Assembly: GCA_002269645.1 (NCBI GenBank)
Contig: NIVC01004186.1
Coordinates: 1-56,246 of the forward strand
Direction of reading: 5' to 3'
DNA: 56,246 nt
Source of the DNA: Macrostomum lignano
Taxonomy: Eukaryota
Position numbers and translations under genes: made by a program. Within the stretch, counting starts at the first letter, position 1; every line of letters starts with the position of its first letter. Shown here one piece after another: positions 1,162 through 7,185 of this stretch. Below the pieces are notes generated by a model that was not told the origin of the DNA, did not search any database, and saw nothing but the letters and a program-made list of their open reading frames with translations.

Positions 1162-4100
1162 CCGCTCCCGCAGTGGCCGCCTATTGAACCTGCTGAGCCT
1201 GGAGATCTCGGACAGCGAGCTGGGTGACATGGTTCAAGCTCCGTTAGCTGTTCGCCAACTCAGCTTAGTGAACAGGTGCTGGCCAGCTGATCAACCAACC
1301 GCTGAAGCTCCAGCTAGCAGCAAAGAAAATCCTGTCAATGCTGATGAACTACAAACTAGCGATCAGTCTGAGAAGGATTTCGATATCGAGGAGCGACCAG
1401 AGCTGCTCAAATTCTGCTTGCTAAGTCCTGCGGGATCCTACACAGATTTCCACATCGACTTTGGCGGCTCCTCGGTCTGGTATCACGTGCTTTGGGGCGA
1501 GAAAGTCTTCTATTTGTTGCCGCCCAACGATGGCAATTTGGCCTGCTACGAGACCTGGATGCTGTCCAGCTCTTCGTCCACCATCTTCCTTGGTGACCGA
1601 TGCGCTAGAGGCGTGAGTAGTGGCGGGATGAATAATTGGCTTATGGCTTTGGCTTTGATTATATTTGGCTCTAGACTTCTTAAGACCAGATATGAGATGG
1701 CTAGATTAGATTTGGCTGTAGACTTATTGAGATTAGATATAAGATGGCTAGATTAGATTCGGCTCTAGAATTAAGATCGGAGATAAGACGGCTAAATTAG
1801 ATTTTGGCACTAGACTTAGCTCGTATTGAGATTAGATATAAGAGGGCTAGATTAGATTTGGCACTAGACTTACTGGGATTACGTAGATCAAGATGGCTAG
1901 ATAAGATTCGGCTCTCGACTTATTGAAATTAGATATAAGAGGGCTAAATTAGATTTGGCTCTAGACTTGTTGAGATTAGATATAAGAGGGCTAAATTAGA
2001 TTTGGCTCTAGACTTGTTGAGATTAGATATAAGAGGGCTAAATTAGATATGATACTAAACTTGTTGAGACTAGATAGGAGATGGATAGATTAGATTTGGC
2101 ACTAGACTTGTTGAGATTAGATATGAGATGGCTAGATTAGATTTTGCATTAGACTTACTGAGATCAGAGATGAGATGAGATGTCTTGATTAGATTTATTT
2201 TTTGTATATTTTCTACTTTTTTCCTTTGTTAGCCGCGCGTTTTGCGAGTGACAGCCGGTCAGACTGTGCTGCTTCCCTCCGGCTGGGTGCACGCCGTCTA
2301 CACACCGATTGACAGCATGGTGTTTGGCGGCAACTTCTTGCATACCTACAGTTTGCCAATGCAGATTAGGTAAGCCTATGGGTGTGATGGGTCTTGCGAT
2401 TGCGTTTTGCTTTGCGGGGTTAGATAGGCCTATTCTGATTGGTCAGTGAGGCTTGGGCATCTCTGATTGGCTAGTGCGGCTTGGGCATCTCTGATTGGCT
2501 AGTGCGGCTTGGGCATCTCTGATTGGCTAGTGCGGCTTGGGCATCTCTGATTGGCTAGTGCGGCTTGGGCATCTCTGATTGGCTAGTGCGGCTTGGGCAT
2601 CTCTGATTGGCTAGTGCGGCTTGGGCATCTCTGATTGGCTAGTGCGGCTTGGGCATCTCTGATTGGCTAGTGCGGCTTGGGCATCTCTGATTGGCCAGTG
2701 AGGCTTGGGCATCTCTGATTGGTCAGTGGCCGTTTTAGTTTCTTTAACAATTGGTCATTTGAATGGTTATAGGATCTACAAGATGGAGCTTCGCTTAGAA
2801 ACCGAGCCGCGCTTCCAGTTTCCCTACTTCGAGAAGCTGCACTGGCTCGCTGCAAAATTGATTTGTGACGAGTTCGAGGCGAAAAAAAACAACTGCGGCG
2901 ACAGTTGCAGCACCGCTAGCGCCTACGGAAGCAGCAAAGACGACAAAGACGACGACAGCAAATTGGCTTTTAAAGAGCGCAGGTCATTGTGCCGCTATCT
3001 GTGGGCCATATTGTCGGACTGGTAAGTTATCTCTGGGAAACTCTGGGCTGTAGCCTAGGGATTTAGAGCGTTGGTCTCGCGACTGAAAGGTCGGGGGTTC
3101 GATTCTCAACCCACTCGGAACAATTTGTGTCCTTGAGCAAGAGAAACTTAACTCTGCATTGCTTCAGTTCACCCAGCTGTAAAATGGGTGCCAGCATTAG
3201 CTGGGGTAATTGAAGGTGTCTAGCTGTGTGGCGACCCCCCAGTCCTTGGACTGAACAGCCGTACGCAGCCTTCAGATGCGCCGCGCAATAGCTGCGGCTG
3301 AGCTGTCGGTTGCACATCTGCCGTTTAGGGCAGGTGTAATAAATAAATTATTTATTATTAATAAAGCGGAATAACTGCGTTAAATATTTTGCAAAGAAGA
3401 CGTTTCCTTCGTACATTACTGCTCCATATTGGCTGAGACTGGGGTCGTGTCCTCAGCTTTTGCTTGTTGGGGCATTTTCATTGGTTGGCAATACATGTAC
3501 ATTCAAAGCTGGATGGAAACTTTATGGCCAAAAATTAATTGCTTCTGCTAAAAACTTTTTATGCAATGTTTTGTCATCATCTATTCCTAAGTGTTCATAT
3601 ATCATCCTCCAGGTACTGAGCCTTCAAATACCATCCCTCAGGTATACTGAGCCTTCAAATAGCATCTCTGAGTACTGAGCCTTCAAATAGCATCCCTCAG
3701 GTGTATTGAGCCCTCAAATACCATCCCTCAGGTGTATTGAGCCCTCAAATACCATCCCTCAGGTATAATGAGCCTTCAAATAGCATCCCTCAGGTACTGA
3801 GCCTTCAAATACCATCCGTCAGGTATACTGAGTCCTCAAATAGCATCCCTCAGGTGTATTGAGCCCTCAAATACCATCCGTCAGGTATACTGAGCCTTCA
3901 AATACCATCCCTCAGGTGTATTGAGCCCTCAAATACCATCCCTCAGGTGTATTGAGCCCTCAAATACCATCCCTCAGGTGTATTGAGCCCTCAAATACCA
4001 TCCCTCAGGTACTGAGCCTTCAAATACTATCCCTCAGGTATAATGCGCCTTCAAATACCATCCCTCAGGTATAATGAGCCTTCAAATACCATCCCTCAGG

Positions 4101-7100: not shown

Positions 7101-7185
7101 ATATTTCTGCGGAATCTGCAGGAAATTCTTCCGTCACAAGACCTCTTTGACGCGGCATAACCGCAATTTTCATAGCGGAGCTTAA
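1162..7185 (+). CDS. KDM7: KDM7/PHF8-family JmjC histone demethylase with three C-terminal C2H2 zinc fingers (5' end outside window)
   Basis: Exons 1162-1612, 2233-2369, 2773-3021, 4727-5246, 5846-5886, 5975-6057, 6809-7185 are all GT-AG bounded and phase-compatible (0,2,2,0,2,1). Motifs: [85 protein letters not shown]. The Fe(II) ligands H-x-D...H are intact. YHVLWGEK and the post-JmjC helix match KDM7A-type proteins better than KDM2 (recalled sequences). Confidence 0.88.
1665..2190. repeat. Degenerate ~47-bp intronic tandem repeat
   Basis: agatataagagggctaaattagatttggctctagacttgttgagatt recurs at 47-nt spacing (e.g. 1931 and 1978). Confidence 0.85.
2437..2725. repeat. 28-bp intronic minisatellite (gattggctagtgcggcttgggcatctct), ~10 copies
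   Basis: Near-perfect head-to-tail copies. Confidence 0.95.
3044..3362 (+). mobile_element. tRNA-derived SINE with a CORE-like central domain
   Basis: Box A-like tagcctaggg (3051-3060) and box B ggttcgattc (3096-3105). Central 3126-3188 tgtgtccttgagcaag..acttaactct..gcttcagttcacccagctgtaaaatggg resembles the MIR CORE consensus (recalled). Ends in an (aat/tta) simple-repeat tail. Confidence 0.75.
3608..4710. repeat. ~31-bp intronic minisatellite (gagccttcaaataccatccctcaggtataat), ~35 copies
   Basis: Head-to-tail copies of 28-32 nt. Every unit contains ccctcag|gt. Confidence 0.95.
5257..5780. repeat. Compound (TG)n/(TCTG)n microsatellite in intron
   Basis: Direct reading. The overlapping VCLS-repeat ORFs are artefacts. 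Confidence 0.97.
6195..6722. repeat. 22-bp intronic minisatellite (gttgagttagctgtgtacagat)
   Basis: Head-to-tail copies. Confidence 0.95.
6809..7185 (+). CDS. Terminal exon encoding three C2H2 zinc fingers
   Basis: [44 protein letters not shown] and [22 protein letters not shown] each fit C-x2-C-x12-H-x4-H. Acceptor ctaatgattgcttttcag ends at 6808. Confidence 0.9.

Follow-up and report, generated by a model that had tools for sequence, protein, structure and literature searches.

The window analysed here is the complete 56,246-bp contig NIVC01004186.1 of the Macrostomum lignano Mlig_3_7 assembly (GCA_002269645.1), as established by protein search and cluster look-up, and positions 1162-7185 of its forward strand are exons 3-9 of the nine-exon gene Mlig028134. 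With a probability of about 0.72, Mlig028134 encodes a 725-residue JmjC lysine demethylase of the KDM7 clade that has no PHD finger and in which a tail of three C-terminal C2H2 zinc fingers, gained after a gene duplication, would act as a recruitment module. KDM7 enzymes normally select their substrate through a PHD finger docking on H3K4me3. In Mlig028134 this finger is missing, and the opposite end of the protein carries a zinc module of another kind. The combination of a KDM7 JmjC domain with three C-terminal C2H2 fingers has so far been seen only in M. lignano. Should the fingers bind DNA or a partner in chromatin, the gene would be a natural experiment in the re-wiring of histone demethylase recruitment, in convergence with enzymes of plants and fungi; with an inert tail, it would be one more lineage-specific domain shuffle. 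Transgenesis and RNA interference exist in M. lignano, so that the recruitment idea is testable. The gene model is already public in GenBank and UniProt under automatic names; its domain architecture is undescribed in the literature searched, which also holds no expression or orthology data for Mlig028134.

Conceptual splicing joins seven exons of the window into a single open frame that ends with a TAA stop codon at 7183-7185. A polypyrimidine tract and AG stand before each of the seven exons, and GT follows the internal ones, so that the introns are of the GT-AG type. The 618-residue product is identical to GenBank PAA48295.1 (BOX15_Mlig028134g2, partial; working label P0142). The initial annotation of this DNA had proposed seven in-phase exons leading from a JmjC core through a basic AAKKPRL segment to three C2H2 fingers; the start at 1162 and the end at 7185 are exact, and all three parts of the chain are present. 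The exons, motifs and fingers are as follows.

1162-1612, forward strand: gene exon 3, the first in the contig, with acceptor tttcag at 1156-1161 and donor GTGAGT; N-terminal half of the JmjC barrel.
1439-1468, forward strand: motif with the Fe ligands H and D in exon 3, aligned to PHF8.
1496-1513, forward strand: GEKVFY with the 2-oxoglutarate (2OG)-binding K in exon 3, aligned to PHF8.
2233-2369, forward strand: gene exon 4; second half of the JmjC barrel, carrying FGGNFLH.
2278-2307, forward strand: motif with the third Fe ligand, H, in exon 4, placed by alignment.
2773-3021, forward strand: gene exon 5; Jumonji helical domain (JHD; PF17811, 4.3e-11) and a paralogue-specific acidic insert.
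4727-5246, forward strand: gene exon 6; first ~50 codons homologous to flatworm KDM7, then a basic stretch, then an orphan tail.
4908-5015, forward strand: basic stretch resembling a nuclear localisation signal, including AAKKPRL, in exon 6.
5846-5886, forward strand: gene exon 7, 41 nucleotides (nt), needed for the frame.
5975-6057, forward strand: gene exon 8, 83 nt, needed for the frame; read-through of its donor leads to a stop after 4 codons.
6809-7185, forward strand: terminal exon of the gene (exon 9); encodes three C2H2 fingers and ends at the TAA stop.
6853-6918, forward strand: finger 1, acidic, with an acidic and hydrophobic helix; C, E, L and M at positions -1, 2, 3 and 6; isoelectric point (pI) 5.7; predicted local distance difference test (pLDDT) score 83-89 in the model described below.
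6949-7014, forward strand: finger 2, 10 residues past finger 1; T, D, R and K at positions -1, 2, 3 and 6; pI 8.1.
7108-7173, forward strand: finger 3, after a 31-residue disordered linker; H, T, S and R at positions -1, 2, 3 and 6; pI 11.6, strongly basic.
7266-7271, forward strand: AGTAAA, 81 nt past the stop; candidate for a variant poly(A) signal.

The 41-nt and 83-nt exons jointly give a +1 shift into the finger frame, and omission of the 41-nt exon, the 83-nt exon or both results in a premature stop within ~30 codons. Between the stop codon and a tandem array of 16-bp period that begins at 7314 there is no canonical AATAAA. Near the end of exon 5, use of an alternative in-frame donor (CGCAG-GTCATT, cut at 2982/2983) would drop 13 residues from the segment 2982-3021, as in the UniProt models P0143 and P0145; this may reflect a genuine isoform or a difference in prediction.

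Three near-identical copies of the gene are present in the assembly. The further copies g1 and g3 (P0001, 725 residues), on contigs NIVC01000650 and NIVC01001484, have two extra 5' exons coding for 106 residues, which in the window would lie beyond the contig start. The contig start falls within intron 2 and inside a 39-bp tandem array, and this array probably accounts for the assembly break by which the gene is cut short. The copies differ at two amino acids, both in gene exon 3; the other exons and the unique intron sequence are almost 100% identical, and the last six of the seven exons seen in the window (2-7) are 100% identical across the three copies, as are the unique parts of their introns. 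This near-identity fits the known redundancy of the Mlig_3_7 assembly (PMC5730564).

The catalytic region gives a Pfam JmjC match of 27.5 bits against a cut-off of 24, and the JHD directly after it is matched at 43.6 bits against a cut-off of 23.4. All named top matches in the protein search are PHF8, PHF2 or KDM7 proteins, and phmmer against the PDB ranks PHF8 (257 bits), KDM7A (252) and PHF2 (223) above KDM2A (211) and Caenorhabditis elegans KDM7 (209). In a nine-sequence alignment (A2) of seven flatworm sequences (P0001, P0004, P0025, P0034, P0049, P0094 and P0111) with insect and fish proteins, numbered after the 725-residue copy (P0001), the Fe ligands H204, D206 and H277, the 2OG-binding residues T201 and K221, and N291 are invariant. 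As its third Fe ligand the protein has His, which it shares with PHF8 and KDM7A; in PHF2 this ligand is Tyr. With these key residues intact, the Fe(II)/2OG catalytic centre is apparently competent. In a neighbour-joining (NJ) tree, with human KDM2A and PHF8 represented by their sequences in alignment output, human KDM2A lies outside the group of metazoan KDM7 and flatworm sequences at 84% (split {KDM2A, Balamuthia, diatom} versus the rest), a moderate support obtained with a single metazoan KDM2 sequence. Pfam gives no match to JmjN, and the metal motif is HxD, not HxE. The assignment of the catalytic domain to the KDM7 (PHF8/KDM7A/PHF2) clade, and not to KDM2 or KDM4, which the initial annotation had put forward, is thus supported by the database matches, the PDB scores and, within the limits of an NJ tree with one KDM2 sequence, the JmjC phylogeny.

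No PHD finger is present in the full-length copy, which begins directly at the catalytic module, aligned to the start of the PHF8 catalytic construct. A tblastn search with six PHD fingers found nothing in the upstream flank at either M. lignano locus (10 kb at L001 and L002, 6 kb at L003). The PHD columns of the nine-sequence alignment are empty in all seven flatworm sequences (two Macrostomum paralogues, three cestodes, a trematode and a monogenean), and the flatworm homologues start at M-x-x-AGTPEF, which corresponds to the end of the PHD-linker in the insect and fish proteins. Since the PHD finger is absent from all seven flatworm KDM7 homologues examined, the alignment suggests that it was lost early in flatworm evolution. 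Mlig028134 is not, then, a PHD+JmjC KDM7 protein to which fingers were added, a point that the initial annotation had missed.

The finger-bearing protein also lacks the C-terminal T-[AV]-[KR]-Q-R-L-[GA]-K motif, which is present in seven of the eight other aligned sequences, including that of the sister gene Mlig013782; the remaining one is a short Cichlidogyrus model that looks truncated. Homology to flatworm KDM7 reaches ~50 codons into the exon at 4727-5246, where W386, P403 and L426 are invariant, and the basic stretch at 4908-5015 roughly coincides in position with a KRPRK-type stretch of the cestode proteins. Relative to the flatworm homologues, Mlig028134 carries two private inserts. 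The two M. lignano paralogues have three intron positions in common and are sisters in the NJ tree with 98-100% bootstrap support, within a flatworm clade supported at 84-86%. Because they are only ~52% identical in the catalytic region, the duplication that separated them is old, and because Mlig028134 is sister to a finger-less paralogue, the tail arose after this lineage-specific duplication. Exon 8 was considered as a relic of the ancestral terminal exon, an attractive idea because its read-through stops after four codons; local alignment of the read-through peptide, 12 residues plus SAYS, with AKQRLGKKLGLFKSSR, each followed by a stop, gave p = 0.1-0.4 when judged against shuffles, which is not significant, and the idea was rejected.

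All three finger units fit C-x2-C-x3-[FL]-x5-[LI]-x2-H-x4-H (C-x2-C-x12-H-x4-H), in agreement with classical C2H2 spacing, and 12 of the 12 zinc ligands as well as the hydrophobic core positions are intact. The C2H2 pattern is found at only these three sites in the six-frame translation of the 56-kb window, and three patterns were reached in 0 of 200,000 shuffles of the last-exon peptide. AlphaFold2 with a nine-sequence alignment of finger matches predicts three ββα units at pLDDT 83-95 joined in part by a disordered 31-residue linker; since the aligned sequences had been hand-picked among C2H2 proteins, the fold prediction is biased, and the model mainly shows compatibility with the fold. The single-sequence AlphaFold prediction of exon 9 has a pLDDT of 40. 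The best Foldseek matches of the fingers are the DNA-bound arrays of CTCF, Kaiso and ZBTB24 with a probability of ~1, and the low template modelling scores reflect the arbitrary orientation of the fingers relative to one another. Judged from their residues, the basic fingers 2 and 3 are candidates for nucleic-acid contact, and finger 1, which is hydrophobic, rather resembles a surface for contact with protein. In some matching proteins a further finger fills the place of the 31-residue spacer, and hence a degenerate fourth finger in this spacer is possible.

The rarity of the architecture was assessed by an exhaustive phmmer search of 1.84 billion representative proteins, with the last 339 residues as the query. 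Within this set, only the M. lignano cluster matches the full length of the tail, and the part of exon 6 beyond its first ~50 codons has no homologue. The other 20 matches cover the finger region only; 19 of them have E values of 1e-9 to 1e-3, and the outlier is an uncharacterised poly-zinc-finger protein of 3179 residues matched at 4e-45 over 35 separate stretches. Where these matches have names, they are generic poly-zinc-finger proteins, found in mosquitoes, a beetle, a starfish and an acorn worm. A JmjC domain is absent from all of these proteins that match the tail, and the same search revealed no relative in M. lignano or other flatworms that could be the donor gene of the fingers. Conversely, among the 120 best KDM7-like proteins the C2H2 pattern occurs in M. 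lignano entries only, and in none of the relatives from other species. In agreement with this, a survey of JmjC proteins lists CxxC, F-box, leucine-rich repeat (LRR) and PHD as the fusion partners in the JHDM1/KDM2/PHF2 family, and C2H2 fusions only in KDM4 and KDM5 (PMC2938197). The architecture is therefore not a common one, and an objection foreseen in the initial annotation is removed.

Mlig028134 shares features with several known systems. Like PHF8, KDM7A and PHF2, which are closest to it in sequence and in the tree, it combines a JmjC barrel, in which HxD...H and the T and K that bind 2OG are present, with a JHD after the barrel; unlike them, it has neither the N-terminal PHD finger nor the T-A-K-Q-R-L-G-K motif and carries three C-terminal C2H2 fingers instead. 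The KDM7A-like proteins of Echinococcus, Hymenolepis, Mesocestoides, Trichobilharzia and Cichlidogyrus, together with Mlig013782, are likewise PHD-less, start with M-x-x-AGTPEF and fall into one clade with Mlig028134, whereas all but the short Cichlidogyrus model end in a QRLAKRLGL-type motif, and they are finger-less. Plant REF6/ELF6/JMJ13 and yeast Rph1/Gis1 are also JmjC demethylases with C-terminal C2H2 fingers, and those of REF6 reportedly bind a DNA motif. However, these enzymes are KDM4-related, with JmjN and JmjC, HxE and tandem fingers, whereas Mlig028134 is a KDM7 protein with HxD, no JmjN and spaced fingers, which bears out the proposal that its tail is an independent, lineage-specific addition unrelated to those of REF6/ELF6 or Rph1/Gis1. 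KDM2A and KDM2B (JHDM1) form the sister JmjC + JHD clade, and their CXXC zinc module targets them to DNA. Mlig028134 differs from them in having no CXXC, PHD, F-box or LRR and in lying outside KDM2 in the tree.

The history best supported by these results is one in which a PHD-less flatworm KDM7 gene underwent an old duplication in the macrostomid lineage. The Mlig013782 copy kept the ancestral tail with its conserved AKQRLGK motif, whereas in the Mlig028134 copy the tail was replaced by an orphan basic region and a terminal three-finger C2H2 exon, with an apparently competent catalytic centre retained; up to this point the history is founded on computed results. The finger tail may then serve as a recruitment module in place of the missing PHD finger, and the protein may be a nuclear enzyme that, by analogy with PHF8 and KDM7A, would remove methyl groups from histone-tail lysines (H3K9me2, H3K27me2 or H4K20me1). 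The sequence targeting and the H3K9/H3K27 substrate put forward in the initial annotation are inferences.

The history just outlined presupposes that the finger exon belongs to the gene and that its catalytic domain is of the KDM7 type, and both points have alternatives. The gene model might be chimeric, its finger exon coming from a separate downstream gene or a polycistronic unit, given that ~7% of the transcriptional units of M. lignano are polycistronic precursors (PMC5730564). This is very improbable, because the open reading frame (ORF) of exon 9 has no in-frame ATG ahead of finger 1, and a spliced leader, which in M. lignano ends in ATG (PMC8629364), would when joined at 6809 enter the wrong frame and meet a stop after 28 codons. 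Exon 9 therefore cannot be a separate gene, since no usable ATG is available to it, and only the 41-nt and 83-nt exons restore its frame, so that a further objection foreseen in the initial annotation falls away. The GC content at third codon positions (GC3) of exon 9 is coding-like (0.58 versus 0.37-0.40 in the non-coding flanks). Moreover, the Mlig_3_7 annotation was not predicted ab initio but built from RNA-seq with StringTie and TACO and merged with a de novo transcriptome, and trans-splice and poly(A) data were used in it to cut polycistronic units, for which the TBONE pipeline is designed (PMC5730564). Independent UniProt models from an older assembly (P0002, P0143-P0145) likewise link the JmjC part to the fingers, and thus two independent annotations concur. 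A catalytic domain of the KDM2 rather than the KDM7 type is at least as improbable. The identity gap is modest (38% to KDM2A versus 45-48% to KDM7 proteins), the PDB search puts C. elegans KDM7 slightly below KDM2A, and a PHD finger is absent; against this stand the named top matches, which are all PHF8, PHF2 or KDM7, the first 43 residues, which pair with the beginning of the PHF8 catalytic construct and lie outside the KDM2A match, the lack of Pfam matches to CXXC, PHD, F-box or LRR at E values up to 1, and the position of KDM2A in the NJ tree.

What the fingers do is a matter of wider choice. They may be a module that binds protein or RNA rather than a reader of DNA sequence, with a partner recruiting the enzyme or the fingers regulating the catalytic domain; this is a possibility of some weight, although not the favoured one. 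The linkers of 10 and 31 residues are irregular, the longer one being predicted to be disordered, all three fingers are of the H-x4-H type, finger 1 is acidic with C, E, L and M at its recognition positions, and the nearest sequences are generic poly-zinc-finger proteins and not members of a known DNA-binding family. However, fingers 2 and 3 have typical recognition residues, polar or basic, finger 3 is very basic, and the closest folds are DNA-bound arrays. The tail may instead be a young, neutrally fixed exonisation without a function of its own, so that the protein would be an ordinary PHD-less flatworm KDM7. This is unlikely: no tail homologue exists in other species among the 1.84 billion representatives, the three copies can yield no selection signal, and a finger-less isoform would be easily made through the stop 4 codons past the exon-8 donor, but the intact zinc ligands and hydrophobic core, the coding-like GC3, the age of the duplication (~52% catalytic identity) and the loss of the ancestral C-terminal motif speak against it. 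The boldest reading, in which a macrostomid PHD-less KDM7 gained DNA-sequence-reading C2H2 fingers and became the first animal KDM2/7-clade demethylase recruited by sequence-specific fingers of its own, a third origin of JmjC+C2H2 after REF6/ELF6 and Rph1/Gis1, is tentative and somewhat less probable than a protein- or RNA-binding role.

Several observations weigh against a recruitment tail on a KDM7 enzyme. The transcript support consists of published RNA-seq-derived models rather than reads or cDNA inspected directly, and the collections searched, Logan included, contain no transcript contig carrying the protein. The copies of the gene are identical in their introns as much as in their exons, and no Mlig028134 orthologue was found in any other species by protein searches including the 1.84 billion representatives; comparison of the three copies is therefore uninformative on purifying selection on the finger exon. 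The limits of the tree and of the AlphaFold2 alignment have been given above. The Pfam scores of the fingers are below the gathering thresholds (23.0 versus 27 for zf-C2H2_4 and 17.3 versus 25.2 for zf-C2H2). Their uneven spacing without TGEKP linkers, remarked on at the outset, is borne out by the measured linkers of 10 and 31 residues in place of the ~7-residue TGEKP-type linkers of a tandem array, and the odd linkers, the H-x4-H spacing of all fingers and the lack of polar recognition residues in finger 1 argue against a standard DNA-reading array.

The introns of Mlig028134 and its 3' flank each contain a tandem array, all of them different: 106-1156, 1657-2177, 2434-2722, 3617-4711, 5257-5780, 6191-6720, 7314-7910 and 8312-8757, with periods of 39, 47, 28, 31, 8-12, 22, 16 and 36 bp, respectively. 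At ~3040-3370, the intron after exon 5 carries a tRNA-like insertion resembling a short interspersed element (…GGTCGGGGGTTCGATTCTCAACCC…), followed by an AT-rich tail with AATAAA at 3338 and 3360; ARAGORN and Rfam gave it no tRNA or Rfam identity.

Downstream of the gene, an intronless 349-residue ORF on the reverse strand at 16775-17824 encodes a Sox-type HMG box (PF00505, 2e-24) with a long Q-rich tail, and a Sox-type ORF also adjoins Mlig028134 downstream in the other two copies of the locus. Two neighbouring ORFs on the forward strand at 20142-21368 resemble a broken piggyBac-type transposase, the second of them matching DDE_Tnp_1_7 at 1.4e-24. A pair of Mab-21-like ORFs (weak Mab-21_C match, 6.9e-5) lies directly downstream of a 790-residue ankyrin-repeat ORF of the same strand at 30395-34669 on the reverse strand, and the ankyrin ORF and the pair may be one gene joining ankyrin repeats to a Mab-21/cGAS-like nucleotidyltransferase fold. 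A GC-rich block of overlapping ORFs with a weak PNMA/gag-like match at 51475-56118 on the forward strand is probably part of a long terminal repeat retroelement that runs past the contig end. Long simple or tandem repeats, strand-biased and with an extreme skew in GC/AT, occur at 12891-13711, at 42611-46247 and elsewhere (for example, GC skew of 0.9 at 44-46 kb); the long ORFs of S, L and P repeats that they create are spurious.

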